DNA of 63,925 bases, counting the filler, from Klebsormidium nitens (taxonomy: Eukaryota > Plantae > Klebsormidiophyceae), in NCBI GenBank assembly GCA_000708835.1. It is 5 parts of 5 records of this genome, joined end to end, with 100 filler letters (N's around TTAATTAATTAA, not from the genome) between each part and the next. Parts side by side here need not be neighbours in the genome. Positions count along the whole stretch, not along the records: positions 43,490 to 61,493 come from DF237962.1; 4 more parts are not named here. One strand, given 5' to 3'. This document shows positions 43,490 to 59,739 of the stretch, piece by piece (the first letter of the stretch is position 1; the number at the start of each line of letters is the position of its first letter). The notes under the pieces are model-generated. The model did no database searches. It saw only the letters and a list, made by a program, of their open reading frames with translations, and had not been told where the DNA came from. Position numbers and translations under genes: made by a program.

Positions 43490-43722
43490 CCGGATTGATG
43501 TGGCGATTGAAGAGTTTCTGGGCGTCCACCACGAAGTACCTAGGTTTCTGATCTGCACTCTACACTTCACCATCGTTTAGGCGGAAGGGGTCGAAGAAGG
43601 AAAACTTCTCTACTTTGTCTTTCAACGGCGACCAGGCGTGATCGAACGAGCCATACGTCCCGGCAACGACGCGTTTCAACCGTGGTAGCGTGCAGAGCGA
43701 CTAAAAGGTGGATTCTACATGG

Positions 43723-44382
43723 TCAATGCCAGTCCATCGCGAGCGCTATGTTAGGGAACTGCTCCTTCATGATGTCCTTGATCTTCGATGCTATCTCCTT
43801 GTGCTCGCGCTGTGAGCCGTTGCTACTCCTGAGGTCCACGTAATGTATCCAGTCCCTCGCGTTCATGGTCATGTACAGCTTGGTCTGCGTGGACATGGGC
43901 AGGACGAAACGTGCACACTCCTTTGCTATGCCTTTCTCCAATGCCTGCGAATATGTGGCGTACGAATCCTTCCACAGCCTATCCTGCTCCGCCACGAACC
44001 AGGCCTTCACGTCTGGCGGCAGGTCGTCCACGGACGACTGCCTGTTCTTGGGGTCCTGGCTCCTGGCTTCGTACACCACGTTCGCATCGGCCTTTGCATA
44101 CCTGGTGCTGAATTGCTGAAAAGTAGCCGACCTGTGCCTCAGGATCTGCTCTGCTATGGCTCTGCTGGTGGTTATCTCGACCGTCATGGAGGCGGTCTCG
44201 AAGACCGACCAGTGACGATTCTTGATGCAATAACGCAACAGCTTGGCACCGCTCTCGTAGTTCCTCTGGTTCTGGGGATTGGAAACCCGCGCGGCGTGCA
44301 CTATGATGTCCTCCGGCCCTAGCCCCTCCAGTTCGCCCGCGCCTCTGCTGAGTGCCACCAGCTTCACCTCGCAAGCTGCCAT
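43723..44382 (-). CDS. thyX: FAD-dependent thymidylate synthase ThyX
   Basis: AARVSNP, LLRYCIKNRHWSVFE, signature RHRSATFQQFSTRY (RHRx7S), KECARFVLP, RDWIHYVDLRSSNGSQREH; intronless; likely ATG at 44382. Confidence 0.96.
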   Translation of the reverse strand: MAACEVKLVALSRGAGELEGLGPEDIIVHAARVSNPQNQRNYESGAKLLRYCIKNRHWSVFETASMTVEITTSRAIAEQILRHRSATFQQFSTRYAKADANVVYEARSQDPKNRQSSVDDLPPDVKAWFVAEQDRLWKDSYATYSQALEKGIAKECARFVLPMSTQTKLYMTMNARDWIHYVDLRSSNGSQREHKEIASKIKDIMKEQFPNIALAMDWH

Positions 44383-44431
44383 CTTTTTATGTGGACTACA
44401 AAAATACAAATCCAGTGCCTAAACCGACACA

Positions 44432-44758
44432 TCACTTTCGTAGCACGTTCAGAAACATCCCGATCATCTCCCCGTGACCCTCCAAGGGGTATACTCCGCC
44501 TACCGCGTCGGTCAGTCGCCAGCAGGTGTATATCGCCAAGTCTCGGACTCTGGATTCGATACTCAATCTAGGTATGGCAAGAGCCAGCTGCGAGTTCAAT
44601 CTACGCAGACGTTCTCCGTTATCGTCCTTGCAGAGCTCCATCTTGGCAATGATCTCCAGCAGCACCCACACCCGATCTTCCACCGTGGACTCGGGAGACA
44701 GAGTCGAGAATCTCCTTTGGAGCTCGCCCAGGACCTCGGCAGTCGTCCGAAACCACAT
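44432..44758 (-). CDS. Hypothetical protein (virus-like block)
   Basis: Open frame MWFRTTAEVLGELQRRF...MFLNVLRK*, co-oriented with and directly upstream of thyX; no recognised domain. Confidence 0.45.
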   Translation of the reverse strand: MWFRTTAEVLGELQRRFSTLSPESTVEDRVWVLLEIIAKMELCKDDNGERLRRLNSQLALAIPRLSIESRVRDLAIYTCWRLTDAVGGVYPLEGHGEMIGMFLNVLRK

Positions 44759-44838
44759 CCTTGTCTGACGCAAAAGGAAAAAATTGGATCCATGCACCCG
44801 AAGTCGAACTTTCGGACGGTATGCTCGCAGTTTTCCTA

Positions 44839-45000
44839 CGCCCGAAACCGACCGCCCGAGAAATTTCTTTCGGGCGCCACCTTTCGCGAAAATATACTCG
44901 TAGGTTTTTCACGCCCGAAACCGACCGCCCGAGAAATTTCTTTCGGGCGCCACCTTTCGCGAAAATATTCTCGTAGGTTTTCTACGCCCGAAACCGCCCG
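44839..45000. repeat. 73-bp direct repeat (2 full copies plus a partial) with TTTCGCGAAA palindromes, upstream of a TATA box
   Basis: cgcccgaaaccgaccgcccgagaaatttctttcgggcgccacctttcgcgaaaatat at 44839 and 44912; TATAAAA at 45092-45098. Confidence 0.85.
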
Positions 45001-45890
45001 AGAAGTTTCTTTCGGGCGCTTTTCAAGCAGTATGCTCGCGGTATGCCTCAAAGCGAAAGCCCGAGAAGTACTTTTCGGACGGAGATCGCTCTATAAAAGG
45101 AGGTTCCTCTCGTTCTCATTCTCAAAAACGCACTTGGCCTCCCCCTTCCCAACAGCTTGCAAGCAACTCCCTCGCACACAGCATCCTTCTGCCTATCTGC
45201 CCTTTCAGCAGCGGCACAGCTTAGCCGCTTCCTTCTCTCCCAACAGCACCCTATTCTCCCACAGCTCGCTTCCCTTTCCTCCACTCACCAGCCAGCAGCA
45301 CCTCATACTCGCACAGCTCGCTTCCTCCAACACCAGCAGCAACGAGGCCAAGTCGCGTCAGATAGTCACGCCGGCCGGCCTTTTGCCTTGTCCTTGTTTT
45401 CCTTTTTGCTGGTCTGCGCAGACCTCTCTTTTCTTCTTCGTGTCTCTGCAAGCCTGGCCAGGCTGTCGTGTCATGCTGCTCTTCGGCAGCTCTTTTTTCT
45501 GCCGTGTCTTAGCTGGGCTCCCGCTTCTTTGCGGCTCCCCTCCACTGTCTTTGTCTTTCGCTGGCCTCTCGGGCCTTGTAGCTGCCTCGTGCAGCTCCTT
45601 CCGAGAAGTATCAAGGTGAGCATTAGTGAAGTAGGATATCTTGAAGTTACTCCATGATCTGCTTCTCGTTTGCTTTGCGAAATATTTGCATAGAAATGTT
45701 CCCTCTGTTGCTCTTCAAACTCGTTGTTTGCAGCATCCTCGCATCGACTACCTCCTGAGGCTCCGCTCGCATCCGCTAGCTGGCCTCTCGGCCCTTGCAG
45801 CTGCCTTGTGCCGCTCCACACCTATCAATCAGATAAGTTCCCTCTCTTGCTCTCCAAACTTCTGATGTTTGCAGCATCCTGCCTCCTTGA

Positions 45891-46093
45891 GTAGGCTCCG
45901 CTCGCACCCGTCGGGCAGGGTGCCGATAAGAGCGAGCATTTGCGGCTCTGTGGGTAGTGCCGTTTGTCCACGGTACGCATACCACTCTGCCTGTAGGCTC
46001 CGCTCGCACCCGTCGGGCAGGGTGCCGATAAGAGCGAGCATTTGCGGCTCTGTGGGTAGTGCCGTTTGTCCACGGTACGCATACCACTCTGCC
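45891..46093. repeat. 102-bp tandem duplication
   Basis: gtaggctccgctcgcacccgtcgggcagggtgccgataag...accactctgcct begins at 45891 and again at 45993. Confidence 0.92.
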
Positions 46094-46579
46094 TTTTCAC
46101 TCCGTCTGACGATGTCGAAAAGCTGTCCGAGCTACTGATCACTTTTACGCTCCACTCACAGGTCCTGATCATCGAGCCTTTTGACGAGCGGACGCGACTG
46201 GAGATCACTACCCTGTGCCTCGTCTACGATCAGGGGCTCGACACACCATCTATGGTCCAGATTTGAATCAAACGGAGGCAAGTCTCGACTGAGTCTTCGA
46301 ATGCATTCGCTGCTGAGTCATATGCACAGGGCGTTTCGTTCCTTCGTAGCAGCAATGACAAAATCCCCCCTGCCGCCTTTGTCTTAAGAGTAACATGTTT
46401 CTTTTTCTTCTTACAGGATATCGCTCGCCGCATGGAGGAGTCTTCGTTTGCACTCTGAGTCCTTTTTCTGGGCGTGTGCTTTCTATGTGACGTGATTCTG
46501 GGTTCTTTTCTGGGCGTATGGAATGATTTTTCTGTGACTTTTCTTCGACTTCTTGGCTGTCAGTCTGTCTTTCTGTCTC

Positions 46580-46970
46580 TGTCGAGTCGGTCGGTCGGTC
46601 AAGTCCAGTCGAGTCGGTCGGTCGGTCAAGTCCAGTCGAGTCGAGTCGGTCGGTCCGTCGAGTCCAGTCCTGTCCCGTCGGTCAGTCCCACCAGCTATAC
46701 ACACCCTACACTAGACACCCTACACTATACACACCCCTCACCCTCTTACCCACTCCAAATACCCTACTGCCTTACCCTTCCCTCCCACACACCCTACTTC
46801 TTAACCCTTTCCTCCCACATACCCTACTGCCCTTACCTATTCCTCACACCCTAATACTACCCTTACCTATCCCTCACACCCTATACTAACCTTACCTCCC
46901 TCACACCCTATACTACCCTTACATATCCCTCACACCCTATACTTACCCTTACCTATCCCTCAAACACACC
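46580..46970. repeat. (GTCG/GTCCA)n microsatellite followed by a C-rich ~28-bp degenerate tandem repeat (ccttacctatccctcacaccctatacta)
   Basis: Read directly from the sequence; the opposite strand is G-rich. Confidence 0.88.
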
Positions 46971-47163
46971 CGCAGTAGAACCACAGATGGCTGCTGCGAC
47001 CCGCAGCTGGGGTTCGATTCCCCATGTGGTTGGACGACGTTGCACATCGAATTATTGCCGGTTGAGATTACTGGTTGTGAATACGTTTCTTAGTATACTT
47101 TTCTCTCTACATCATGAAGACAACAACCAGCAACCAGCAAGGTTGGGGAACTTAAGGGAGTTC

Positions 47164-47770
47164 AGAGATCGATCTGTCCAATCTAGAAAGATCAGATCGA
47201 TCACCCCTTTTCTTAGGGTCATTGAAAAATGGACCGGTTGCCGGTTGCTGGATGGTGACGTGGCACATCGAAAAGNNNNNNNNNNNNNNNNNNNNNNNNN
47301 NNNNNNNNNNNNNNNNNNNNNNNNNNNNNNNNNNNNNNNNNNNNNNNNNNNNNNNNNNNNNNNNNNNNNNNNNNNNNNNNNNNNNNNNNNNNNNNNNNNN
47401 NNNNNNNNNNNNNNNNNNNNNNNNNNNNNNNNNNNNNNNNNNNNNNNNNNNNNNNNNNNNNNNNNNNNNNNNNNNNNNNNNNNNNNNNNNNNNNNNNNNN
47501 NNNNNNNNNNNNNNNNNNNNNNNNNNNNNNNNNNNNNNNNNNNNNNNNNNNNNNNNNNNNNNNNNNNNNNNNNNNNNNNNNNNNNNNNNNNNNNNNNNNN
47601 NNNNNNNNNNNNNNNNNNNNNNNNNNNNNNNNNNNNNNNNNNNNNNNNNNNNNNNAGAGATCGATCTGTCCAATCTAGAAAGATCAGATCGATCACCCCT
47701 TTTCTTAGGGCCTCTGAAAATTGATCCGGTTGCCGGTTGCTGGGTGGTGACGTGGCACATCGAATTATTG
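47164..47770. repeat. ~110-bp repeat present on both sides of an N gap
   Basis: agagatcgatctgtccaatctagaaagatcagatcgatcaccccttttcttaggg...gtggcacatcgaa at 47164-47273 and 47657-47764, with a few differences. Confidence 0.8.
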
Positions 47771-47952
47771 CCCTGACATGCGGTGGGATGCCCTGTTCCT
47801 CAGGGCACTGGCGTTCCTCCTCTGAAGGCGCCCAGAGAACAAAGTCTCCCTCGTTCTCGTAATGATCATCGAATCCTTCGCTTCGATGTACGCCGATCGG
47901 GTCCATGGGCGCGATATAGGAAGGTCGCACGAAAAGTGACGGGTACGCGGAT

Positions 47953-49551
47953 ATGGACCCTAGATTGCACATCCTGTCGGTCGGCGAAGAGCGCATCGTC
48001 GCTACTTGTCTCGCGGACGTCAGAGACAGGACCAACTCCCTAGCCGCTCCTCTGATCAGGAGTCTCAGTGACAGAACGTGCACGGCCAGGGCCGTAGAGT
48101 TCCGCGACTACATGTTCGACAAGCAGTCTCTGGAGGCCTTGAGCGAGTACCTCTCCACATCTACGAAGCTGGAAAGGATAGTCTTTGGGAACGGCTGTGC
48201 TTCCGAGATATGCATGGCCGGGGCCAGCTTGTCTAGAGTGATCGGTGCGTGCGACAGGGATGTCTTCATAGAGGGCTCCTTGCCGCGGGCGATGGGCCAC
48301 GTGAGCGTCATCCAGGCGGCCGACCCTACCGGGCAGCGATTGCGACGGGCTCTGCTCTCCTTCGAGCCGGAGCACTGGGCGTACGACTGGTCTTCCGACT
48401 CGGAGACGCTGGGTCTCATGCCTTCCGTCACCAACGGAGACTTCGTCTGGACTCGACTACATCCGGATGGCATCCTGACCTTGAACGTCACGGACGAGGA
48501 TATGCTACAAGTGGAGTGGAGCGTTTGCGCGAACGAGCTCAAGAGCACGGCGCTACACTCTGCAGACGACGTCGCCTCATTCGCCAGGGCTCCTCGCACT
48601 TTCGGCTCCCTAGAGAGCTTGACGGTCTCCTCGTGCGGATCCAAGGGACTCACTTACTTCGGACGGCACCTAGCGGCGGAGACGCGCGTGAGACGCATCC
48701 GTTCGGAGGGTCCGTTGGCGGACTCGGTGGCTCTGTTGAAGGGATTCGAGGAAGGGCTCGTCGAGGGGAGACCCTATGAGGCCGAGTGCACGTCGCATCT
48801 CGCTCATGACGGATTGGGCGTGAGGCTCCGCAGGCTGGAGAATCTGTGCTTCCTCAGGTGCTACCGTCTGACTCTGCACGTCCGAGTAGACGGTTGCAAC
48901 GGTTTCGAGAGGAGGCGCTTCGACGAGACCATGACGTTCCTGCTCGGGTGGTTCCCGAAGCTGGAGGCCCTGGAGGTGGACATCGGCGGAGACTCTATGG
49001 GCGGCCCTTACCAAGGGTGCGTCCCCATAGGGCGCTTCGCAGCTGCGGTGCCGCGGACGTTGAAGGAGCTGCGGCTCGCTTTCGGTGGGGCGTCCACGCT
49101 CTTCTGTGCCGCGAGTCGGCTCCACGAGTTCTTAGAGGCAGCTCGATGCCGGTTGCGGTATCTCAGCATCGAGGGCTGGGCAGCCGGAGCGGAGGCCCTA
49201 TCCAGAGTGGTACGGATCGAGGGTCTCGAGCGACTTTGCATACCTCAGGCTTGCACCTCCGTAGCAGGCTTGAGGAACGCTTTACGGAGACGGATGAGAG
49301 AGCTCGACGTGGGAATCTCGCTGCTGGGCAGGAGGGATATAGCAGAGTTCGCTCGCCTCGTCCAGAGCTTCGCCAGACCCACCCGTCCGAGCAAGCTGCT
49401 GTTGCGGAACGGCGTCCGAAGCGAGATGATGGGGGAGCTAGGACGAGCTCTGAGGGCAGCAGGATGCTTCGACTACGTCTACACGTCTGCCGATGAGAAG
49501 ACGATCACGATCTGGCTCGCTCTGCCCGAGGAAGAAAAAGATTGCCAATGA
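47953..49551 (+). CDS. Intronless 532-aa protein with degenerate leucine-rich (RNI-like) repeats
   Basis: Repeated LxxLxL motifs: KLERIVF, SLESLTVSSC, RLENLCF, FPKLEALEVD, TLKELRLAF, RLRYLSIEG, GLERLCIP, RMRELDVG. Confidence 0.6.
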   Translation: MDPRLHILSVGEERIVATCLADVRDRTNSLAAPLIRSLSDRTCTARAVEFRDYMFDKQSLEALSEYLSTSTKLERIVFGNGCASEICMAGASLSRVIGACDRDVFIEGSLPRAMGHVSVIQAADPTGQRLRRALLSFEPEHWAYDWSSDSETLGLMPSVTNGDFVWTRLHPDGILTLNVTDEDMLQVEWSVCANELKSTALHSADDVASFARAPRTFGSLESLTVSSCGSKGLTYFGRHLAAETRVRRIRSEGPLADSVALLKGFEEGLVEGRPYEAECTSHLAHDGLGVRLRRLENLCFLRCYRLTLHVRVDGCNGFERRRFDETMTFLLGWFPKLEALEVDIGGDSMGGPYQGCVPIGRFAAAVPRTLKELRLAFGGASTLFCAASRLHEFLEAARCRLRYLSIEGWAAGAEALSRVVRIEGLERLCIPQACTSVAGLRNALRRRMRELDVGISLLGRRDIAEFARLVQSFARPTRPSKLLLRNGVRSEMMGELGRALRAAGCFDYVYTSADEKTITIWLALPEEEKDCQ

Positions 49552-49561
49552 CAGTAGGAAG

Positions 49562-50116
49562 ATGCATCTCTTCTCTACTTCTACCGTCTTGGTCGTAGCC
49601 CGCGTTCTCTTGTTCGCATGCGTCACCGGAGGGGTCATGTGGTGGTTCTACCTGAAGGAGGAGAAAAGGACCAAGCGCCCTGTAGGAGTGGTAGGATCGT
49701 GCGATACGGAGAGAGTCGTGCAGCCCCAGGAATCGGAAAAGACTCCGGAGTTGCAGGATATACCCCCTGGTCACGAAAAATACGCTAATGTATTCGAGAA
49801 GCATGCCGAGAGGTTCGACGATGCATACGATAAGATCCGGGAGGAGACACTCTGCCTGGCCAAGAGGAGGCGGCAGTATTCCATCATGTTGGACGCTTCG
49901 TCCAGGTGCATGCGTTGCCTCTACAATATTCGCATGTGGATGCACAACGACCTCGCCATGGAGGAACGCATGCGCACCTTCGAGCTCATATGCGACGACT
50001 ACTTCGCCAGATGCCTCAGGCATGCGTATGATCGTTCGTACACTCCTGCCGACGAGACGCTGATCCCGCGGCGTTGGAATAGGAGGTGGTCGGATCCATC
50101 TCCGAGCGTCGCGTGA
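49562..50116 (+). CDS. Hypothetical protein with an N-terminal transmembrane helix
   Basis: MHLFSTSTVLVVARVLLFACVTGGVMWWFYL hydrophobic stretch. A diverged paralogous fragment at 52472-52532 differs mostly at synonymous positions, which supports coding status. Confidence 0.65.
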   Translation: MHLFSTSTVLVVARVLLFACVTGGVMWWFYLKEEKRTKRPVGVVGSCDTERVVQPQESEKTPELQDIPPGHEKYANVFEKHAERFDDAYDKIREETLCLAKRRRQYSIMLDASSRCMRCLYNIRMWMHNDLAMEERMRTFELICDDYFARCLRHAYDRSYTPADETLIPRRWNRRWSDPSPSVA

Positions 50117-50164
50117 AAGAAATATTCTGAGTTGAGATACGGATCTGGTCTATACCGTCCGAGA

Positions 50165-50244
50165 TGCTGCGTTGGCATACTGCTGCGTTGGCGTGCTGCG
50201 TTGGCGTGCTGCGTTGGCATATATTGCTGCAGCTTCTGCAGCAT
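50165..50244. repeat. Four copies of TGCTGCGTTGGC plus a tgctgcag-ctt-ctgcagca hairpin upstream of tnpA
   Basis: Copies at 50165, 50181, 50194 and 50207; hairpin at 50226-50244. Confidence 0.9.
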
Positions 50245-50317
50245 TGACTAGAAAACACGGCCTATAAAGAAGGCATTAGGCACCATGTGCGTCTCATTCT
50301 AAATCTTTCTTCTCGAC

Positions 50318-50992
50318 ATGTACAGTAGCTTTCGGAGAGCTAAGGACCATTTTGGCGTCTCCTCTAGCACCCCGCGTAGATGGGCTAATGAAGGAAAGAT
50401 CGCCACCAAGCGCACCGCAGGCAACCACCGCGTCTTCTCCATCCCCAGCCTCGAAGAGAAAGAAACTCGGGCATGCATCGCCTACTGTAGGGTCAGCTCC
50501 TCCAAGCAGCGCGACGACCTGCAGCGACAGAGGAGGTTTCTATCTGACCAACTCCCCAGACACGAGAGTGTCTCGGACGTGGGCTCGGGGATCAACTTCG
50601 AGAGACCAGGACTGCTATCCATTCTGGAACGAGTCCTACAGGGCAGAGTATCGGAGGTGGTGGTTGCCAGCAAGGACAGACTGTGCCGTTTCGCATTCGA
50701 GCTCGTGGCCTGGATATTCGAACGTCAAGGGACACGGATCGTGGTTCTCGATACGCGAGATAAGTCACCGAGCGAGGAGTTCACAGAGGACATCCTGGCC
50801 ATCATGCAAGTATTCTCTTGTCGATGGAACGGGAAGAGGCGCTACAGGGGTCCACAAGAGCGGGGGCGCGATAAAAGAAGCGGAGGTGGCTCTAGCATTC
50901 CCCTCGAGGTGCAGGAAGATAAGGGCCTTCCCGACGGGACATCAGCGGCTAATCCTGAGGAAGATGGTGGGAGGGTGCCGGAAACTGTATAA
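50318..50992 (+). CDS. tnpA: IS607 serine recombinase/transposase TnpA (N-terminal MerR-like wHTH plus serine-recombinase catalytic domain)
   Basis: FGVSSSTPRRWANEGKIATKRTAGNHRVF (HTH); IAYCRVSSSKQRDDLQRQ (catalytic Ser codon at 50495); DVGSGINFERPGL; DRLCRFAFEL; EEFTEDILAIMQVFSCRWNGKRRY. Confidence 0.95.
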   Translation: MYSSFRRAKDHFGVSSSTPRRWANEGKIATKRTAGNHRVFSIPSLEEKETRACIAYCRVSSSKQRDDLQRQRRFLSDQLPRHESVSDVGSGINFERPGLLSILERVLQGRVSEVVVASKDRLCRFAFELVAWIFERQGTRIVVLDTRDKSPSEEFTEDILAIMQVFSCRWNGKRRYRGPQERGRDKRSGGGSSIPLEVQEDKGLPDGTSAANPEEDGGRVPETV

Positions 50993-52325
50993 CGAGACGG
51001 TGGCCATGATCCGGGACAGGCGTCTCCCGTTTGCGAACGTAGAAGCATTCGAGGAGGCAGAGCGACGGCGGAAGACCAGGCTTGAGGATAGAAAAAGGAA
51101 GAAGGCGGAGGATGATGGCTCCGAGTTCGAAGAGGTGCACTACAAGGGGACGAGTCACCCTTGGATGGACAAGGTGTACGTCAAGAACTTTCTGGTGCCC
51201 GAGGACAGCGACTTCATGAAAGCGAACCCCTACCTGAAAGAGATACCCAAGGAGACCAGACAGCAGGCGGTGGAGGATGCCATTGAGGCGTACAAGGCTG
51301 CCTTCAGCAACATGGCAGTGGGGAACATCAGCAACTTTGAGGTGGGCTTCAGGAAGAAGAAAGACCCGCGTTGGTCTATCGCGGTCGCCTTCAATGCGGT
51401 TTCGGGGAGCAGGTTCTGGCCACGCAAGGTCAAGGATTTCGGAGAGCTGGTCGTGGCGGAGCCACGGCACCTGAGGAAGCGCTACGGGCGGGAGCTGAAG
51501 ATCTCGAAGGATCAGCTCGGGCGCTACTGGATGGTCATCATGAACGACAAAGGACCCAAGGCTACGACGGAAGAGGCGGCGAAGGGCGTCGAAGAGCTGC
51601 GCGAGTCGACCCGCGAGAACCAAGCGGGCGACAAGCCGGTGGCTGCCATCGACCCGGGGATTCGGACTCGACACACCATCTACATGACGGACGGGCGGCT
51701 CGTGGAAGTGGAAAATCAGGACATACAGAGGATCGTGCGTCTCTGTCGGCACGTGGACAGGTGCATATCGGCTCTGAGCAAGGGAGAGCTCGCGGTGTCC
51801 AAGAAGCACCTGAAGAGGAACCCGAAAGCATCCGTGATGGCCCTCTTCGACCACTATCGGCCTTCGAAGAAAGTCCAGGGCCAGCATGTTGTGCGTCTGA
51901 GTGGCGAGGACAAGAACAGGATACGACAGAAGATGCACCAACTGAAGGCGAAGATAGAGAGCTTGAAGAACGAGATAGACGACCAGACGGTGGCCTACCT
52001 GCTTCGCGAATGCAAGACGGTCCTGTTGCCCCCATTCGACATGCACTCCATGTCCACAAGGCTGCACCACAAGACGGCGAGGGCCATGATGCAGTGGAGA
52101 CACGGGACGTTCAAGACCAAGCTCGTGGAAAGAGCTCCCGGCCGGGGGGTGCGGGTCATGATAGTGTCGGAGGCATACACCAGCAAGACCTGCGGGGCGT
52201 GCGGGTGGCTGCATCCCAGTCTGGGTGGGAGCAAGCTATACGTCTGTCGAAGGTGTGGGGTAGAGATGGACAGGGACCACAACGGTGCCCGGAACATATT
52301 CCTGAGAGCGATTAGGTCAGAATGA
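50388..52325 (+). CDS. tnpB: IS607-type TnpB / Fanzor2 RNA-guided endonuclease (645 aa from the first ATG)
   Basis: RKIRAFPT...GGCRKLYN; RuvC-I AAIDPGIRT (D at 51651); VLLPPF where the canonical Glu would be, with the alternative Glu in VSEAYTSKTC (52170); zinc finger CGACG...CRRCG; RuvC-III MDRDHNGARNI (D at 52275). No internal stop. Confidence 0.95.
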   Translation: MKERSPPSAPQATTASSPSPASKRKKLGHASPTVGSAPPSSATTCSDRGGFYLTNSPDTRVSRTWARGSTSRDQDCYPFWNESYRAEYRRWWLPARTDCAVSHSSSWPGYSNVKGHGSWFSIREISHRARSSQRTSWPSCKYSLVDGTGRGATGVHKSGGAIKEAEVALAFPSRCRKIRAFPTGHQRLILRKMVGGCRKLYNETVAMIRDRRLPFANVEAFEEAERRRKTRLEDRKRKKAEDDGSEFEEVHYKGTSHPWMDKVYVKNFLVPEDSDFMKANPYLKEIPKETRQQAVEDAIEAYKAAFSNMAVGNISNFEVGFRKKKDPRWSIAVAFNAVSGSRFWPRKVKDFGELVVAEPRHLRKRYGRELKISKDQLGRYWMVIMNDKGPKATTEEAAKGVEELRESTRENQAGDKPVAAIDPGIRTRHTIYMTDGRLVEVENQDIQRIVRLCRHVDRCISALSKGELAVSKKHLKRNPKASVMALFDHYRPSKKVQGQHVVRLSGEDKNRIRQKMHQLKAKIESLKNEIDDQTVAYLLRECKTVLLPPFDMHSMSTRLHHKTARAMMQWRHGTFKTKLVERAPGRGVRVMIVSEAYTSKTCGACGWLHPSLGGSKLYVCRRCGVEMDRDHNGARNIFLRAIRSE

Positions 52326-52492
52326 GCCCCATATGAACCCGGCGTGCCGGGGGATGGGTCGGAGAGATAGCTCCTAGTCTCAGAAGGTTTGAGAGACTTG
52401 GCACCAGGCGAGAGGTAGGAGATCGTACGGTGCACAGAGACTTGAGCAGGATTGCTTAGGTTTCAACTATCGGCGGCGATACTCAACCATGT
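52326..52492 (+). ncRNA. Candidate omegaRNA scaffold plus guide (boundaries inferred; may begin inside the tnpB 3' end)
   Basis: Hairpins cccat..cccgg-cgtg-ccggg..atggg (52328-52358), ggag-agatag-ctcc (52361-52374), agtctc..gagact (52376-52398) and tgagca-ggat-tgctta (52443-52458) lie between the tnpB stop and the right junction. This is the position where TnpB/Fanzor omegaRNAs are encoded. Confidence 0.6.
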
Positions 52493-52532
52493 TGAACGCT
52501 TCCTCTAGATGCATGCGTTGCCTGTACAACAT
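52472..52532 (+). pseudogene. 3' fragment of a paralog of the 49562-50116 gene, truncated by the IS607 element and by a gap
   Basis: RRYSTMLNASSRCMRCLYN versus RQYSIMLDASSRCMRCLYN; 50/62 nt identical by hand count (52471-52532 versus 49868-49929). Confidence 0.8.
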
Positions 52533-52585
52533 NNNNNNNNNNNNNNNNNNNNNNNNNNNNNNNNNNNNNNNNNNNNNNNNNNNNC

Positions 52586-53277
52586 TCAGACAAGACCAAG
52601 CCCGCCTGGGTGGACGCCGGGGTCGCGCACGACTTCTCCGAGTTCGCCGTCTCCGGGAAGAACCTCTGCGGCATCAACCCCGGGCAGGGCACAAGGTCTT
52701 CTGCACCGCCGACTGGACCGCGGCAGCGCCCGTCTTCAAACCGCTGCAGGGAGACGGCATGCTCCGCAACCTGTCCCTCTCGGGAACGAGCCTGTGCGGA
52801 GCGGACGCCCGTCCCGGCGTAGACAACATCTTCTGCAGCAACGACTTCATTTCGAAACCATTGACTCAAGTACAAGGCAGCGGCAACGTGACCGCTCAGG
52901 GGAAGGGCAGGCTCTGCGTCGTGGCCAAGGACCAACGAGTGTTCTGTACCGACTCTATCGTCCAAAACCCCGTCTGGACCAAGAGAGGGGACCTCGCCAT
53001 AGACCTCGCCATGAACGAGTCGGGCGGGATATGTGCTTTGAACCCCGACGGGACCATCTTTTGCCAGCCGGACCTGACGTCGGGGAAATGGGTGGCCACG
53101 AACGTCGCCGAAAAGAAGAACGTGAACCTCGCCACGAATATTCATGGGACGAAGCTCTGCATCTTCAACAGCGATAAGGCCCCCGCTTACTGCCATGACA
53201 ACGTCTTTGCAGGCGACAAGGCGGGTTGGTATGGGTTGGCAGCTGCTGGACAACGGTTCGGGTTGGAAAAAGTGTAG
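52586..53277 (+). pseudogene. Tectonin/lectin-like beta-propeller repeat protein with two Cys per ~40-aa repeat; 1-nt frameshift near 52685; 5' end in gap
   Basis: Repeats PAWVDAG..FAVSGKNLCGINPG|HKVFC; PVFKPL..LSLSGTSLCGAD..NIFC; ..GRLCVVAKDQRVFC; PVWTK..GGICALNPDGTIFC; KWV..TKLCIFNSD..AYC. The first repeat is in a different frame from the rest. Confidence 0.55.
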
Positions 53278-53281
53278 GCCC

Positions 53282-54022
53282 TCATGCCGTCAGAGCTGGC
53301 GCGGGTGCTGGAACGTGGGTAGTGGGTTCGAGCGTGCGATCGACCCAGAGAGGGTTGAGCCCGGCTAGGACTCCTCCCAGTAGAGGGCCGACGATGAAGA
53401 CCCAGATGTGAGTCCATTGTTTCCGATCGTTGCTCCCGGATGCGACCGCCGTTCCGAGGGATCTCGCGACGTTTATAGAGCAGCCGTCTAAGGGAAGGAG
53501 TGCCAGATGACAGACCAGGACCGCGCCACCGATAGCGATGGGAGCGTGTCCGTACAACTTGGTAGCGGCGTAGGAAGTGTTGAGCACGACCGTTACGAGG
53601 AAAGCCGTCGCCAGTATCTCCGCCAACAGGGCTTGCCACAGGGCGTGTCCATCTAGGACGTGATTGACTCCTTTGCCGCCCGCGTCGTAGAGGTCCCAAT
53701 TGCTCACGAGCCTCGCGTAGCAGGCGCCGCATATCGCCCCTATGACCTGGGCGACGATATACAACGCAGCCTTCTCTATAGATATCATCCTCTGCAACAA
53801 GAAAGCCAGAGTCACGCTCGGATTCAAGTGAGCTCCCGAGATGGAGCCGAAAGCGTACGCTAAGGTCCCTATAGTGCCTCCAAATACGGAAGCGACACCC
53901 AGAGGCGCGAGAATGCTGCCGTTATCATAGATAGGGAGAGCGGGGTAATTCGTGAGAGACAGTGTGATGATGAAGAGGAAAATGCCACTTCCGACGAACT
54001 CGGCCGCTACCGCCTTGTACAT
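53282..54022 (-). CDS. Aquaporin (MIP family), intronless; NPS and NVA in place of the two NPA motifs (alternative start at 54073)
   Basis: AEF motif (VAAEFVGS), ISGAHLNPSVT, YIVAQVIGAICG, LLAEILATAFLV, HLALLPLDGCSINVARSLG, WVFIVGPLLGG. Confidence 0.93.
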   Translation of the reverse strand: MYKAVAAEFVGSGIFLFIITLSLTNYPALPIYDNGSILAPLGVASVFGGTIGTLAYAFGSISGAHLNPSVTLAFLLQRMISIEKAALYIVAQVIGAICGACYARLVSNWDLYDAGGKGVNHVLDGHALWQALLAEILATAFLVTVVLNTSYAATKLYGHAPIAIGGAVLVCHLALLPLDGCSINVARSLGTAVASGSNDRKQWTHIWVFIVGPLLGGVLAGLNPLWVDRTLEPTTHVPAPAPALTA

Positions 54023-54218
54023 GATGGCGACCGATACCTGATAAACTACAAGCGAGAATATTATGCCGGCCATACGCCCGAGGCCGCGGCAGGCATCGTT
54101 CGCCGGCTTAGGGCAAGCAGGCCTCCCCTTGCCGGTGCTATAGGATTGCGGTCGATGCACATGGTGCGTTTCGCGAATATCTTCGCGGTAAGATATATCG
54201 AGTATCGAGTACCTTTTG

Positions 54219-55069
54219 ATGGACGAAGCGAGGATCCAACGGAACATAGAGGAGGCGATAACGCTCTTGAGACGTGGCCTCTCTGGGGACGACATCCTCG
54301 CGATCTTCCAGGCCCGAAACGAAGGTCGCGGACCCACGTACGCTCTGCACCCCGAGGCTTGGGCCACCGTGATGCGGCGTGCGAAGCGGAGAGCTTCTCG
54401 CCTAGATCCCATCCCCGTCCCGACTGCAGCTCCTGCAGGGCCGAGTGAGCTATTTCAGCTGGACGAAGCGAGGATCCAACGGAATACCGAAGAGGCTATA
54501 ACGCTCTTGAGACGTGGTCTCTCTAGGGACGACATCTTCGCGATCTTCCAGGCCCGAAACGAAGGTCGCGGACCCACGTACGCTCTGCACCCCGAAGTCT
54601 GGGCCACCGTCATGAGGCGTGCGAAGCGGCGAGCTTCTCGCTTAGGTCCCATCCCCGCCCCGACTGCAGCTCCCGTCCCTCCACGACCTGTACCGAGACC
54701 ATTTGTACCTCCCGTCTCTCCACGACCTGTACCGAGACCACAGGTACCTCCCGTCCCTCCACGACCTATACCGAGACCACAAGTACCTCCCGTCCCTCCG
54801 CGACCTGTACCGAGACCACAGGTACATCCCGTCCCTCAGCGACCTACACCGAGACCTCCCGTAGCTCCCAACCAGGATCAGAATAGACCAGCTACCCTGT
54901 TCGACTGCCACGACGTCCCTGGTGATGGGAATTGCTTTTACTCGGCCGTCGCGGTCGCGTTGGCAAACAGGCCGCTTCCTCTACCTCAACTACGAGAGAG
55001 GGCTATGCAGTTGCGCAACGCCGGCCTCGAATACTTTGATAGGTTCCAAGAGGCGCTCTTCGTCAATGC
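54219..55069 (+). CDS. OTU-domain protein copy 1 (two helical ~60-aa repeats, Pro-rich repeats, start of OTU); truncated by gap
   Basis: MDEARIQRNIEEAITLLRRGLS...RRAKRR x2; (PPVPPRPVPRPQV)n; LFDCHDVPGDGNCFYSAVAVAL. Confidence 0.75.
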
Positions 55070-55089
55070 NNNNNNNNNNNNNNNNNNNN

Positions 55090-56493
55090 GTGATGCGGCG
55101 TGCGAAGCGGCGAGCTTCTCGCCTAGATCCCATCCCCGTCCCGACTGCAGCTCCTCCACAGGCAAAGCCGACTGAGCTATTTCAGCTGGACGAAGCAAAG
55201 ATCCAACGGAACACCGAAGAGGCTATAACGCTTTTGAGACGTGGTCTCTCTAGGGACGACATCCTCGCGATCTTCCAGGCCCGAAACGAAGGTCGCGGAC
55301 CCACATACGCTCTGCACCCCGAAGTCTGGGCCACCGTCATGAGGCGTGCGAAGCGGCGAGCTTCTCGCTTAGGTCCCATCCCCGCCCCGACTGCAGCTCC
55401 CGTCCCTCCACGACCGATACCGAGACCATTTGTACCTCCCGTCTCTCCACGACATATACCAAGACCACAGGTACCTCCCGTCCCTCCACGACCTGTACCG
55501 AGACCATTTGTACCTCCCGTCTCTCCACGACATATACCGAGACCACAGGTACCTCCCGTCCCTCCACGACCTATGCCGAGACCACAGGTACCTCCCGTCC
55601 CTCCACGACCTATGCCGAGACCACAGGTACCTCCCGTCCCTCCGCGACCTATACCGAGACCTCCCGTAGCTCCCAACCAGGATCAGAATAGACCAGCTAT
55701 CTTGTTCGATTGTCACGACGTCCCTGGTGATGGGGATTGCTTTTACTCGGCCGTCGCGGTCGCGTTGGCAAACAGGCCGCTTCCTCTACCTCAACTGCGA
55801 GAGAGGGCTATGCAGTTGCGCAACGCCGGTCTCGAATACTTTGATAGGTTCCAAGAGGCGCTCTTCGTCAATATTTTTGGTCTGCCCTCTGGTGACAGAA
55901 ACCGAGTGCGTCGCGGACGACGCGCTACCTTCATGTATCCGCAATGGGCGAACCACGTCCAGATAGAATGTGTCGCCCGCGCTATGCGGTGTCGGATACG
56001 CGTGTTCGGCATGTGGCCCGATGTATATAGTCTCGCCGTAAGACTCGCAGAACCTTTGACGCTGGAACAACTGGACCTCCTGTGCTCGACGGTAGACGAT
56101 GGGCAACTACGGAGGCGGAGAAGTCATTACGTAAACGATGATCCGAACAACTACGACAGAACCATTTCATTGATAAACTGGACGGACACACACTTTGGAG
56201 TTGTCTTGCCACACGTGAGGGGCAGGCCGAGGCAACGTGTGAGTGCTAGCGGGAATATACCCCCTGCGAATGTCAGTTATGGAGAGGCTCTGCAGGTGAC
56301 ACAAAGGCTCGCTGGACGCGAGGCGATACTCGTGAGGGAGAGGCGGGAGAGAGCGGACCGAGAAAGACAGATGAGGGGCAGGAGTGCGGCAGGAGTACGG
56401 CAGAGTGCTACGGTCAGTGCCAGGTATGCGAACACGAGTAGCAACGAGGCTCTGGCACTCGCCTTACAGGAGTTGGAATTCTCAGAAGATTGA
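55090..56493 (+). CDS. OTU-like cysteine protease (deubiquitinase) copy 2 with helical repeats, Pro-rich linker and C-terminal ubiquitin-binding-like motif; 5' end in gap
   Basis: DVPGDGDCFYSAV (Cys at 55738), LRERA, WANHVQIECVARAMRCRIRVF, ISLINWTDTHFGVV (His at 56191), C-terminal SNEALALALQELE. Confidence 0.85.
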   Translation: MMRRAKRRASRLDPIPVPTAAPPQAKPTELFQLDEAKIQRNTEEAITLLRRGLSRDDILAIFQARNEGRGPTYALHPEVWATVMRRAKRRASRLGPIPAPTAAPVPPRPIPRPFVPPVSPRHIPRPQVPPVPPRPVPRPFVPPVSPRHIPRPQVPPVPPRPMPRPQVPPVPPRPMPRPQVPPVPPRPIPRPPVAPNQDQNRPAILFDCHDVPGDGDCFYSAVAVALANRPLPLPQLRERAMQLRNAGLEYFDRFQEALFVNIFGLPSGDRNRVRRGRRATFMYPQWANHVQIECVARAMRCRIRVFGMWPDVYSLAVRLAEPLTLEQLDLLCSTVDDGQLRRRRSHYVNDDPNNYDRTISLINWTDTHFGVVLPHVRGRPRQRVSASGNIPPANVSYGEALQVTQRLAGREAILVRERRERADRERQMRGRSAAGVRQSATVSARYANTSSNEALALALQELEFSED

Positions 56494-56525
56494 CTCTTTT
56501 TCTTCTGATCGAATCGTAGGATAGG

Positions 56526-58472
56526 ATGACCACGGCCACCATCAAGACGAGGAAACTGCTCGTAGATAGCCCGGACGCGGATGACTTTCTGATCGTCTCC
56601 AACGGTGTGCAACTGGTGACGAACGTGCTCGTAGACGGGTCCCTCTCCGCGTCGGTCCCCGTGATGACCTTGCAAGCAGGAACGATTCAGTGCTTCGGCA
56701 GCAACGGCGACGCCTGGTTCCTCTCGCGTGCGGCGGACGGGACGGTCTCGCTCGGGCAGAACGTAGCGGGGTCTCGCCGTGCACTGGCATCGCTCGCGTG
56801 CTCAGTGGACGACGGTGCATCTGGATTGGGAACGTTGAGCGTCAGGTCTCTACAGAATGTCGACCAGGCCGGTCGTTACCCATTTCGGACGCGCATTGAC
56901 ACCGACAAGAGTCTGGTGACGCAGTGCTCCACCGACGGCACGGCTTGGACGACGATACGGAGAGATGCTGCTTCCATCGCTACCTTTGCGCAATCCATCC
57001 TCCCCGCATCGGGCAATCTCAACGTGGGGACCGGCAGCAACCGCTGGCTTGGACTGTATGCTTCCAACGTAGATGCGGATACGATCGCATGTGGGGCCGC
57101 GACGTTCTCGTGTAATCTATCGGTTTCGGGCGATGCTTCGGTCGGGGGGTCGTTGCAGGCGAGCAGTGCCGTGGTGGGAGGGAGTTTAGCGGTGACGGGT
57201 CCCGTCGCTCTATCGAACGCTCTGACGGGCACCTCTGCGACGTTTTCTAGCAACGTGACCATCGCTGGATCGTTCTCATATTCCAACCTCGCACTCAGTG
57301 GGAGTTTATCCGTGGCTGGTCTCACTACTATTTCAAACACTCTGAGAGCCACTTCGGCGACGTTCTCCAGTAATGTGACCGTGTCTGGAACTTCTACTCT
57401 CTCGAGCGATGCGAACATCAGAGGAGCCCTTGCTGTGACCGGGCCACTCACTCTTTCCAGCGCCCTTTGGGGAAATTCGGCGTCTTTCTCAGGTAATCTA
57501 AGCGTTTCTGGAGCTACGACTCTCTCCAGCAATACTACGGTGGGAGGAAGCTTGGCAGTAACCGGCCCCGTGACTCTGTCCAGCACGCTAGGAGGCACTT
57601 CTGCGACTCTCTCTAGCAACCTGACCGTCTCTGGATCTACGACTGTATCGGGCGCTCTGGGCGGAACAACAGCAGCTTTTTCCAGCAACCTCAGCGTCTC
57701 TGGAGTTACGACGCTATCGGGCGCTCTGGGAGGCAGCTCTGCTACCTTTTCGAGCAATCTGACCGTCTCTGGTACTTTTACTCTCTCCAGCAATGCGACG
57801 GTAGGCGGAAGCTTGTATGTCAGCGGGCCCGTCACCCTCTCTAGTACCCTGGGAGCCACGTCGGCTACTTTTTCCAGCAACATGAGCGTCGCCGAAATAA
57901 CCTCTGGAACCCTATCAGCGAGCGGACCGGTCACTCTCTACAACACCCTCGGAGCCACCTCCGCCACGTTTTCGAACAACGTGTCGATTGGCGGCACCCT
58001 GTCGGTAGCGAGCAATCTGGCGGTCACCGGCCCCGCCACCTTTGCATCCAACATCACCATCTCAAACACCGATCCGATCAACTCTCACAAGACGTGGGCC
58101 TCTTGGACCCCATCTTCTGATTCTAACGCGACGTTAACGACTTTCTTCGCGAGATACACGTCGATCAATAAGAGAGTCACGGTCGCTTACTCGCTGAGTT
58201 TCACTGTCGCGTCGTCCGTGGCCAGTACCAGCATCTCCCTGCCTCCAGGACATTCAGTTGCGTATTCGGCACAACGCACGCAGATCTTCAGCAAGAACGG
58301 CGGGTCGAACATCTACGTGACAAGCTACGGGAGTATCACCGTTCCGACCGCAGGGACTGCGACAGGTCTGGTCACGGCCGACAGCACTACTTCTCGGCTA
58401 GTATTTGCCCTCACGAACTTCTTGGCGGGTACCTGGACTGCATCAGGTACCTTGGATTATGAGATCGCTTGA
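56526..58472 (+). CDS. Virion fibre / tail-fibre-like protein with Ser/Thr/Gly-rich beta repeats
   Basis: GNLNVGTGSNRWLGLYASNV motif; more than 10 repeats of (A)TFSSNLxVSGxxTLS / GGSLxVTGPVTLSS; C-terminal WASWTP...ARYTSINKRVTV domain. Confidence 0.7.
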   Translation: MTTATIKTRKLLVDSPDADDFLIVSNGVQLVTNVLVDGSLSASVPVMTLQAGTIQCFGSNGDAWFLSRAADGTVSLGQNVAGSRRALASLACSVDDGASGLGTLSVRSLQNVDQAGRYPFRTRIDTDKSLVTQCSTDGTAWTTIRRDAASIATFAQSILPASGNLNVGTGSNRWLGLYASNVDADTIACGAATFSCNLSVSGDASVGGSLQASSAVVGGSLAVTGPVALSNALTGTSATFSSNVTIAGSFSYSNLALSGSLSVAGLTTISNTLRATSATFSSNVTVSGTSTLSSDANIRGALAVTGPLTLSSALWGNSASFSGNLSVSGATTLSSNTTVGGSLAVTGPVTLSSTLGGTSATLSSNLTVSGSTTVSGALGGTTAAFSSNLSVSGVTTLSGALGGSSATFSSNLTVSGTFTLSSNATVGGSLYVSGPVTLSSTLGATSATFSSNMSVAEITSGTLSASGPVTLYNTLGATSATFSNNVSIGGTLSVASNLAVTGPATFASNITISNTDPINSHKTWASWTPSSDSNATLTTFFARYTSINKRVTVAYSLSFTVASSVASTSISLPPGHSVAYSAQRTQIFSKNGGSNIYVTSYGSITVPTAGTATGLVTADSTTSRLVFALTNFLAGTWTASGTLDYEIA

Positions 58473-58511
58473 ATGGTCCCTCCTTTTTTCACGTCTCTCT
58501 GATAGCAGCCC

Positions 58512-59693
58512 ATGTCTTCATCCGTGTACTGCCCCACCTTGCACACCAGCTACGGCTCGGTCGCACCGCTGTCCCCATTCGGCGAGAAGGTCGGCGTGCA
58601 TAAGACGAATATCTTCAATCTGAAGCCTAGCTACGGCCTCAGCGTCATACGAGACGACACGTACACGACCGGCAACGGCACCGTCACTGGAACTTTGGGG
58701 CAGCCAGAATTCGTCCTGACGGCTCCCGCATCGTCCTCAGCTAGCCTGGTGAGTGCGGAGCGTGGTCGCTATATCGCCGGCTTCTCCGCCGAAGTAGGGA
58801 TCGGGGTGCGGGTGCCACAAGCCCTGACGGGCACTCAGACTTTTCAGTGGGGATACACAGACAGTAGCTTCCAGAACGGCTTCTACTTTCAGATCTCTGC
58901 CTCAGGGCTGTCTGCCAACATCGTGCGCAACGGGGTAGTCAGCAGCATCCCAGCCTCCTCCTTCAATTGCGACCGTCTCGATGGCACCGGCCCCAGTGGC
59001 CAGATCTTGGACATGACCAAAGGCAACATCTGGCACATCGTCTACTCGTGGTATGGTTACGGAGCGGTCAACTTCCAGCTGGTCTGCACCGATACTTTCG
59101 GTAATCAGTTCGTGCAGTCGCTCCACCGTTGGGCGCCGTCCGGTCAGACTTCCACGATGTTTCCGAACCTCAACATAAGTACGTTGCTGAATAACACCGG
59201 AAGCGGCACCATCAATGCCTACGTCGCCGGCCGCCAGTATTCAATATACGGGGAGGAGAGCACGACTCACCGCGTCACCTCCGGTTACAACCAGGTCACC
59301 GTGACTTCGGCGACCTGGAAGCCCATAGTCTCCTTCCGTCGCAAAACCGGTTGGACGCACTGCGGCGTTCGTCTGATCTCCTACGATGCATTCGCGAATC
59401 AGGATGCATACCTGCAGGTGCGGGTGACGTCTACGCTGACGGGAGCGTCCTGGACTACCGTACAAGATTCTCTCGATGCGGAGACCTGCCTGCAGGTCGA
59501 CACGTCCGCGACCGCCATCAGCGGGGGTCTGGTGCTATACACGACCGGCGTGAGCAGCGCAAAGGCCGGCGGATCGACCGACGTGCTCGACATTTACCTC
59601 AACGAGACGGACATCATCACGGTATGCGCAAAGTGCATCACCGGCTTCAGCGGCGCCATCACTGCAGTGCTGCGAATGGAAGAACTGTGGTGA
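58512..59693 (+). CDS. Phage/giant-virus-type structural protein with a DGTGPSG motif (paralog 1)
   Basis: SPFGE...AERGRY...WGY..NGFYF...FNCDRLDGTGPSGQILDMTKGNIWHIVYSWYGYGAVNF. The family is recalled from phage virion proteins; no search was run. Confidence 0.65.
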   Translation: MSSSVYCPTLHTSYGSVAPLSPFGEKVGVHKTNIFNLKPSYGLSVIRDDTYTTGNGTVTGTLGQPEFVLTAPASSSASLVSAERGRYIAGFSAEVGIGVRVPQALTGTQTFQWGYTDSSFQNGFYFQISASGLSANIVRNGVVSSIPASSFNCDRLDGTGPSGQILDMTKGNIWHIVYSWYGYGAVNFQLVCTDTFGNQFVQSLHRWAPSGQTSTMFPNLNISTLLNNTGSGTINAYVAGRQYSIYGEESTTHRVTSGYNQVTVTSATWKPIVSFRRKTGWTHCGVRLISYDAFANQDAYLQVRVTSTLTGASWTTVQDSLDAETCLQVDTSATAISGGLVLYTTGVSSAKAGGSTDVLDIYLNETDIITVCAKCITGFSGAITAVLRMEELW

Positions 59694-59739
59694 GACAGCG
59701 GAGCTTCTTTTTCTCGGGTACACTCAGGAGGGCACACCC

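Follow-up and report, generated by a model that had tools for sequence, protein, structure and literature searches.

Results

The Fanzor2 N-terminus and most of tnpA are probably encoded by the same bases

The element described here is an IS607-type transposon on a scaffold of the alga Klebsormidium nitens (DF237962.1), which occupies positions 43490-61493 of the window, i.e., of the whole analysed stretch of 63,925 nucleotides joined from five records of assembly GCA_000708835.1. The element carries tnpA, encoding a serine-recombinase transposase, and a gene for the nuclease Fanzor2, a homologue of TnpB. In all likelihood it harbors a true dual-coding region on one strand, in which the N-terminus of Fanzor2 is read in the +1 frame inside tnpA, and this N-terminus is very probably translated from there. 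Judged from sequence comparison, the nesting is a conserved design and not an accident; it is ancestral and shared by bacterial pro-Fanzor IS607 elements and giant-virus-like contigs. An earlier note on this DNA had placed the overlap at 50388-50992 (605 nt), a KRKK cluster at 50454-50465 and a block extending from PFW to SWFS at 50619-50750, and had assigned the same bases to the linker between the helix-turn-helix (HTH) and catalytic domains of TnpA and to the catalytic domain itself. These positions and assignments were reproduced, as was the open +1 frame, the first ATG of which is at 50388.

The nuclease frame is free of stop codons from 50280 to the TGA at 52323-52325, and 90% of tnpA is dual-coding. 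The ATG at 50388 is located 70 nt after that of tnpA and is the only one upstream of the conserved nuclease core. No further ATG occurs in this frame before 50964, which falls inside the first conserved TnpB element, so that initiation at this position would delete the conserved first WED strand (RKIRAFPT). When the synonymous codons of tnpA were shuffled, the +1 frame was free of stops in 45 of 20,000 trials, with about 4.3 stops expected. Resampling with the codon usage of the nuclease core resulted in zero stops in 92 of 20,000 trials, and shuffling of the codon order in a single one of 20,000. Given the TnpA protein sequence, a stop-free +1 frame thus has a P of about 0.002-0.005. The third frame over the K. 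nitens tnpA contains 14 stops. Because the shuffle test was post hoc and concerned one locus, the argument is carried by the comparative data.

The nested frame is conserved in homologous elements

A word-index protein search identified proteins of 599-634 amino acids with 35-39% identity to the nuclease, plus one with 74%, all of which span the N-terminus; the same type of search with a large alignment added almost nothing. At six closer loci (L001-L006; nuclease identity 35-75%, GC content 0.41-0.54), tnpA is intact and the nuclease frame is open across it in all six cases. The corresponding shuffle P values were 0.001-0.024 at five of the loci, and the value for L005 is not comparable as two real stops upstream of its Fanzor ATG were counted. 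The same nested arrangement was found at L198, which, together with L003 and the K. nitens copy, constitutes what is referred to as the K. nitens clade in the following.

A scan of bacterial genomes, with patterns taken from the core only, produced 80 loci from Cyanobacteria, Chloroflexota and other phyla, which represent the pro-Fanzor clade (PMC10711439). A metagenome scan, in which one search pattern was located inside the overlap, yielded 80 further loci, and a scan of viral contigs with a 58-sequence alignment yielded 31, including metagenome-assembled genomes (MAGs) of giant viruses. The viral scan found nothing with a 7-sequence alignment, and a degenerate DNA pattern derived from the NSWYEH segment of the mimivirus Fanzor2, ApmFz2, had no match in IMG/VR. 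For loci with a complete adjacent tnpA, a stretch of about 500 nt of the +1 frame proved free of stops in 44 of 55 cases from bacteria and in 47 of 58 from metagenomes. The +2 frame was open in none of them (0/55 and 0/58), with an average of 8.9 stops in the bacterial loci and 9-10 overall. The open +1 frame persisted in loci down to a GC content of 0.26. The nested layout, consisting of the open frame, an ATG near the tnpA start and the PFW/WWLP/SWFS motifs, was present in more than 100 homologous loci ranging from bacteria to giant viruses. For the tnpA overlap, the shuffles and the AT-rich homologues speak against chance openness due to GC-rich codon bias, as may be considered in view of a 314-codon off-frame ORF at 51371-52315 (see below), and this explanation was rejected.

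The start codons of the two frames lie close together. The offset of the nuclease-frame ATG from that of tnpA is +4 or +7 at 23 loci and +67 to +76 at 24 loci (+70 in K. nitens). Four of the closer loci begin with ATGTATG, which places the nuclease ATG 4 nt after that of tnpA; here, the first AUG is preceded by a pyrimidine at -3 in three of four cases and followed by T at +4 in all four. The K. nitens copy has lost this start (ATGTACAG), and the ancestral +4 ATG is gone. All three copies of the K. nitens clade retain ATGAAG. A two-codon, out-of-frame mini-ORF occurs at 50380-50390 of the K. nitens copy (ATGGGCTAATG), the TAA stop of which overlaps the Fanzor ATG; it is not conserved in L003 or L198.

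The same pair of frames might alternatively serve a programmed +1 (or -2) frameshift that generates a TnpA-TnpB fusion, for which the second frame would be open for read-through only. Frameshift fusions of adjacent genes are a known theme among insertion sequences (IS), as in the OrfAB proteins of IS1 and IS3, and the frames stood in the +1 relationship at every locus examined. However, such a mechanism requires openness only downstream of the shift site, whereas at most loci no stop interrupts the frame as far back as the tnpA start, and in-frame ATGs recur at +4, +7 or about +73. A conserved slippery motif was not seen, although no search was aimed at one. In addition, ApmFz2 was purified and its structure solved as a stand-alone protein of 520 amino acids with its own N-terminus (PMC11832414). 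We consider a frameshift very improbable, and separate initiation of the nuclease within tnpA to be the preferred reading.

Several loci delimit the range of this arrangement. The decayed relative L199, which served as a negative control, has stops and frameshifts in both genes. At the distant IS607 locus L190, the nuclease frame opens only about 23 nt before the tnpA stop, which corresponds to the classical short overlap. In the giant-virus MAG L188 (GVMAG-S-1017244-26), the nested N-terminus is open across tnpA; a single in-frame stop was observed early in the nuclease core of this locus (L188:3194-3196). Three viral contigs (L175, L177, L181) carry solo nuclease genes without an adjacent tnpA. 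In these, only about 65-70 open codons occur upstream of the core, and a profile of the N-terminal extension gave no match. In copies without tnpA, the extension seems to be lacking or of another kind.

Synonymous sites of tnpA are constrained under the nuclease motifs

As the nuclease is read in the +1 frame, the third codon positions of tnpA are the second positions of the nuclease codons. In saturated pairs, i.e., those with less than 40% core identity, the third-position identity at conserved residues with four- or sixfold degenerate codons was 0.42-0.44 in tnpA compared to 0.28 in the non-overlapping nuclease core. The per-column third-position homozygosity was 0.42 versus 0.28 (54 non-redundant loci, Mann-Whitney p=1.3e-11). 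The synonymous constraint on tnpA peaked beneath the motifs PFW, WWLP.TD and SWFS, at 50618-50630, 50645-50675 and 50735-50747. One Leu codon of tnpA was xTG in 54 of 54 loci, preserving an invariant Trp of the nuclease frame. Within the K. nitens clade, third positions differed by 0.22-0.30 in tnpA, compared to 0.41-0.46 at free third positions of the core. Over the first 90 nt of the overlap, and again over the tnpA tail (50861-50989), variation was greatest at the wobble position of the nuclease codons, indicating that here it is the nuclease frame that is under constraint. The codon-level comparison in both frames thus agrees with the overprint claimed in the earlier note: more than 100 loci keep the frame open, and tnpA is constrained at synonymous sites under the nuclease motifs. 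Stop depletion beyond that imposed by the TnpA sequence, maintenance of both frames in divergent homologues and reduced synonymous change in the older frame were all observed.

The overprinted extension resembles the N-terminal domain of a solved Fanzor2

Pfam gave no match for the first 201 residues of Fanzor alone. A structure model was calculated with AlphaFold2 (AF2) from the 58-sequence alignment and reached a mean predicted local distance difference test score (pLDDT) of 77.5. In this model, residues 1-72 are disordered (pLDDT <50) and are followed by two islands (residues 73-97 and 112-132), while the core is confidently predicted from about residue 165 and mostly exceeds a pLDDT of 85 from residue 170. 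The plan is the same as in ApmFz2, in which residues 1-53 form a disordered nuclear localization signal (NLS) region and residues 53-130 a structured N-terminal domain that is absent from other TnpB structures (PMC11832414). Solved TnpB chains aligned from profile position 175 or so onward, and none of them covered the N-terminal extension. The profile alignment to ApmFz2 begins at chain residue 78 and positions SWFS on N82-S83-W84. The RuvC fold of ApmFz2 is completed by the RuvC-R subdomain (residues 65-91), in which Asn82 and Ser83 touch the pseudoknot of the omegaRNA (PMC11832414). Among 58 diverse long forms, W80 of the K. nitens protein is invariant and S118 nearly so. By this alignment, the SWFS block and the structured N-terminal domain of the mimivirus Fanzor2 are homologous.

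The KRKK cluster (residues 23-26) fits the pattern K-(K/R)-X-(K/R) and is located in a segment with a pLDDT below 50. Its codons vary within the K. nitens clade (AAG AGA AAG AAA for KRKK in K. nitens, AAA CGA AGG AGG for KRRR in L003, and AAG CGG AAG AAG for KRKK in L198). Across the bases of the linker, K. nitens and L198 share 2 of 14 TnpA residues as opposed to 8 of 14 Fanzor residues. N-terminal NLSs were functional in 21 of 22 Fanzors tested (PMC10530073), and KRKK is a likely candidate for a nuclear-import signal. A second basic cluster (RRRKTRLEDRKRKK) is a less obvious NLS candidate as it lies inside a confidently predicted helix of the REC lobe in the AF2 model. The suggestion of the earlier note that overprinting was the origin of the nuclear-import signal needs amending, since Cyanobacteria, Chloroflexota and other bacteria have IS607 elements with the same nesting, which is thus ancestral and older than eukaryotes. 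As these bacterial elements share both the nested frame and basic patches, the overprint cannot have arisen for nuclear import. The basic cluster itself may be a later tuning of an existing leader and a possible eukaryotic adaptation.

Weighing the nested N-terminus against an incidental open frame

A number of observations weigh against a long, nested Fanzor N-terminus. Alignment to the solved structure was obtained only from SWFS onward and not for the PFW island, and outside the clade the first 72 residues show little conservation, in addition to being predicted as disordered. Compared to bacteria, the eukaryote/virus clade has leaders with only marginally stronger basic clusters. Stops in the nuclease frame of homologues, which would contradict the overprint according to the earlier note, were absent from most loci (the 44 of 55 and 47 of 58 given above); about 18% of the loci, however, carry one to four in the 5' part of the overlap, which implies that the leader is dispensable or shorter there. 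At 55 of 93 loci an in-frame ATG is located no more than 150 nt from the core, and short forms of the nuclease may be made as well. In the K. nitens copy, the spacing of 70 nt and the out-of-frame AUG at 50380 make the case for simple leaky scanning less clear-cut than it is for relatives with ATGTATG. Finally, the loci were ranked by tblastn against the full query of 645 amino acids and one metagenome pattern was located inside the overlap, so that an ascertainment bias is possible; the open-frame percentages may be inflated by this, but not the absolute number of independent loci.

Taken to the extreme, the open frame would be incidental and untranslated, the motifs a mere shadow of TnpA, and Fanzor would start near its core at GTG 50886, CTG 50955 or ATG 50964. 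The frequent ATGs close to the core would fit such short products, as would the failure of Pfam to recognize anything in the first 176 residues. Furthermore, strong conservation of TnpA automatically conserves part of the +1 translation, and GC-rich coding sequence gives rise to long off-frame ORFs such as that at 51371-52315. Against this, the absence of stops is significantly unexpected given the TnpA protein, both here and at the homologues, and the frame remains open at a GC content of 0.26-0.35 while the other frame averages 9 stops. The synonymous constraint is specific to the Fanzor motifs, as illustrated by the xTG codon, and the counterpart of SWFS in a solved Fanzor2 is a structured subdomain that contacts RNA (PMC11832414). 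In addition, a start at 50964 loses the conserved RKIRAFPT strand. We regard an incidental frame as improbable and retain translation of the Fanzor N-terminus from inside tnpA.

The nuclease core carries the hallmarks of Fanzor2

Within the Fanzor ORF, Pfam identified Cas12f1-like_TNB (E=3.2e-18) and HTH_OrfB_IS605, the latter starting at residue 177 (about 50916). The best match in the PDB to a profile of the 58 long forms was the mimivirus Fanzor2 (9b0l_P, E=2e-73), which was also the top Foldseek match of the AF2 model (E=1.3e-21) at an identity of about 15%. The residues aligned to the catalytic triad of ApmFz2 are present as D422 (51651-51653), E595 (52170-52172) and D630 (52275-52277); for ApmFz2, Asp324 and Glu467 have been described as catalytic (PMC11832414). 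D422-P423-G424 and E595, the latter within SEAYTSKTC, were invariant among 58 homologues, and the two segments align with DPG and NEYLTTKTC of ApmFz2. Both hallmarks of Fanzor2 were thus found, a DPG motif in RuvC-I and a catalytic Glu that has moved to just upstream of the Zn ribbon.

The Fanzor core is also overlapped by long ORFs, one in the +2 frame (51371-52315, plus strand, 314 amino acids) and one antisense (50949-52214, minus strand, 421 amino acids). The former is open in L003 as well (L003:3924-4895) and closed in the distant homologues L001 and L002. Most likely, these off-frame and antisense ORFs reflect openness due to the codon bias of GC-rich coding sequence.

The element and its parts

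The features of the element are compiled in Table 1. In blastn comparisons, L003 and L199 matched 50288/50289-52473/52474 and L198 matched 50339-52480, which delimits an element of about 2.19 kb; accordingly, the right homology boundary lies at GG (52472-52473), while the left end is defined only to about 50288. A terminal inverted repeat was not seen in a repeat analysis of the element, and blastn detected no second copy in the piece 43490-61493. The tnpA product consists of a MerR-type HTH, a linker, the resolvase catalytic domain and an unconserved tail, in this order. Pfam matched Resolvase to residues 54-181 (E=3.6e-19) and MerR to residues 12-40 (E=7.9e-5), the latter below the Pfam cut-off yet at the expected position, and a hidden Markov model (HMM) built from homologous TnpAs scored the K. 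nitens protein with 364 bits. Two features of IS607 elements, a serine recombinase with an N-terminal MerR-type HTH and a same-strand overlapping gene for a RuvC/Zn-ribbon nuclease, are present, and as expected of a Fanzor2 the nuclease is a TnpB homologue from a eukaryote, its sequence being deposited as K. nitens.

Table 1. Features of the K. nitens element (window positions)
Feature	Position	Strand	Basis or remark
IS607-type element (IS607EU-like)	50288..52473	+	Extent of nucleotide homology to three related copies; right end GG
tnpA, serine-recombinase transposase, 224 aa	50318..50992	+	Intact ORF; Pfam; TnpA HMM
Fanzor2/TnpB long ORF, 645 aa	50388..52325	+	+1 frame relative to tnpA; Pfam, PDB profile, Foldseek
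Probable dual-coding stretch	50388..50992	+	Fanzor aa 1-201 and TnpA aa 24-224 on the same bases
KRKK basic cluster (NLS-like) in the Fanzor leader	50454..50465	+	Overprinted on the TnpA HTH-catalytic linker (EEKE)
PFW / WWLP.TD / SWFS motifs of the Fanzor frame	50619..50750	+	Overprinted on the TnpA catalytic domain
Canonical TnpB core (WED/REC/RuvC/Zn-ribbon), from RKIRAFPT	50916..52322	+	Pfam; TnpB structures; AF2
Structured 3' non-coding region, putative omegaRNA scaffold	52326..52473	+	Conservation; RNAalifold; ends at GG

A deposited K. nitens protein (P0001, 865 amino acids), which matches the nuclease with 100% identity across 71% of the query, offers another reading of the locus. According to this model, a 160-nt GT...AG intron (50688-50847) is spliced out and joins residues 1-124 of TnpA to Fanzor from residue 155 onward. 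P0001 does contain the exact junction DRLCR/VHKSGG, and GT and AG are present at 50688 and 50846. However, the protein is chimeric and absorbs the unrelated flanking ORFs 49493-50116 and 52600-53277, and splicing would destroy the catalytic domain of the recombinase and delete the SWFS island. The acceptor AG is missing from L003 and L198 and the donor GT from L198, both unspliced ORFs being intact in these relatives, and bacterial homologues with the same frames cannot splice. A spliced TnpA-Fanzor fusion is thus extremely improbable, and with splice sites unconserved in relatives the intron in P0001 (model spanning 49493-53277) was rejected as an annotation artefact in favor of two separate, overlapping genes.

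Whether the element is still in use is a separate matter. It may be a dead relic, with neither ORF expressed in K. nitens and the dual coding a fossil from an earlier host, e.g., a virus. The single copy in the piece, the atypical scaffold with long intronless ORFs lacking Pfam matches and the loss of the ATGTATG start (ATGTACAG) would be in line with this. On the other hand, both ORFs, the catalytic residues and the structured RNA region at the 3' end are intact, and the decayed L199 illustrates how fast stops build up in both frames. We take a relic to be unlikely, though less so than the preceding rivals; this reading bears solely on whether the element is active today and is compatible with the dual-coding design.

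The 3' region and the flanking sequence

The 148-nt region downstream of the nuclease gene (52326-52473) is 87% identical to a solo copy in L003, compared to 77% for the whole element. RNAalifold predicted several helices with 47 pairs, 8 of them with compensatory changes. Rfam identified no family in 49900-52540. From its conservation and predicted fold, the region is probably the omegaRNA scaffold. The solo copy (L003:733-879) is a second copy of the 3' region alone and resembles a 'ghost' right end.

A 61-nt direct repeat (82% identity) occurs at 49869-49929 and 52472-52532 and starts exactly at the right junction (GGCGGC...). Its upstream copy is located about 420 nt before the left end of the element, inside the ORF 49493-50116, and looks like a paralogous unoccupied target. 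The left flank shows no such homology, which points to a rearrangement or to a tandem paralogue. An assembly gap is present at 52534. Four tandem copies of a 13-16-nt unit (TGCTGCGTTGGCRT) occupy 50165-50225, just outside the left homology boundary. They were rejected as TnpA-binding left-end repeats, being outside the region homologous to the related copies and not shared by these. The scaffold further contains assembly gaps, several long uninterrupted ORFs (393-648 amino acids) without Pfam match, an intronless MIP/aquaporin gene (53285-54412, minus strand) and proline-rich repeats at about 54216-55175. Being unusual for an intron-rich alga, the scaffold may be virus-derived DNA.

Discussion

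The findings can be combined into the following model. The serine-recombinase gene tnpA would be the older frame. The nuclease would start at ATG 50388, read +1 through the remainder of tnpA and reach the TnpB core at about 50916. The 176 overprinted residues would form a disordered leader, rich in Ser, Pro and basic residues and including KRKK, followed by two short folded islands, PFW...WWLP.TD and SWFS, the latter corresponding to the RuvC-R subdomain of the mimivirus Fanzor2. We infer that a single transcript may give rise to both proteins through the use of alternative start codons lying close together, presumably by leaky scanning in eukaryotic hosts and from a shared ribosome-binding region in bacteria. 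A two-gene bacterial element would thereby become workable under the monocistronic translation of eukaryotes, and its expression in eukaryotes would have a simple route in such neighboring starts. The basic cluster would have been refined later, for entry into the nucleus.

With somewhat less confidence than for the K. nitens element itself, we think that the arrangement extends to the whole IS607 clade from bacterial pro-Fanzor to eukaryotic and viral Fanzor2, in which the N-terminal domain of the nuclease would lie entirely inside tnpA in the +1 frame, as an ancient dual-coding region of 500-700 nt with starts a few nucleotides apart. In that case, numerous nucleases of the clade that have been annotated or tested may be truncated at the N-terminus. 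Gene callers that forbid long overlaps would truncate nucleases with an N-terminal domain hidden in tnpA; for P0003, as an example, an internal Met was taken as the start despite an intact long frame. Such truncation would remove the subdomain that contacts the guide-RNA pseudoknot in the one solved Fanzor2 structure. This is of relevance because compact genome editors are being sought among Fanzor and TnpB nucleases and because the evolutionary path of these proteins from bacteria to eukaryotes is an open question. The nesting could have pre-adapted the lineage to translation with one start per mRNA and to the acquisition of an NLS leader, and would help to explain why the nested IS607 lineage, and not others, colonized eukaryotes. 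Fanzor2 derives from cyanobacterial IS607, and the question why pro-Fanzors in particular were successful has been posed before (PMC10711439). Among conserved same-strand overlaps reported for cellular mobile elements, this one would also be on the long side, and it would tie the evolution of transposase and nuclease base by base.

It has been described that orfA and orfB of IS607 'often overlap' (PMC6188088, PMC3673617). An extension of the nuclease inside tnpA is not stated in these two publications, in PMC11832414, PMC10530073 or PMC10711439, in Bao and Jurka (2013), in Saito (2023) or in a September 2026 OMEGA review, although an earlier description elsewhere is possible.

Among known systems, ApmFz2 (L79; PDB 9B0L) shares a disordered N-terminal NLS leader and a structured extension before the WED domain (PMC11832414, PMC10530073), as well as the DPG motif, the catalytic Glu shifted before the Zn ribbon and the association with an IS607 TnpA. 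It differs by an identity of only about 15% and in that the PFW/WWLP island of the K. nitens family remains without alignment. The bacterial pro-Fanzor IS607 elements (Yoon et al., PMC10711439) have the same type of TnpA, the signatures of the nuclease core and the +1 nesting, but reside in prokaryotic hosts, have a nuclease identity of 24-31% and leaders that are on average less basic; neither the extended overlap nor a long nuclease form is mentioned for them in the publications consulted. Classical IS607/IS1535 elements likewise are two-gene serine-recombinase insertion sequences with a same-strand overlap, GG ends and no inverted repeats (PMC6188088, PMC3673617). In the distant relative L190, however, the overlap comprises about 23 nt, compared to the 605 nt that, in the K. 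nitens element, would encode conserved and partly structured protein. Outside of transposons, turnip yellow mosaic virus is reported, by Matsuda and Dreher in 2006, to express the overlapping p69 and p206 ORFs from AUGs 7 nt apart on one eukaryotic mRNA. These closely spaced starts resemble the ATGTATG and ATGnnnnATG of the relatives of the K. nitens element, although the virus is an RNA virus, the proteins are unrelated and the starts are 70 nt apart in the K. nitens copy.

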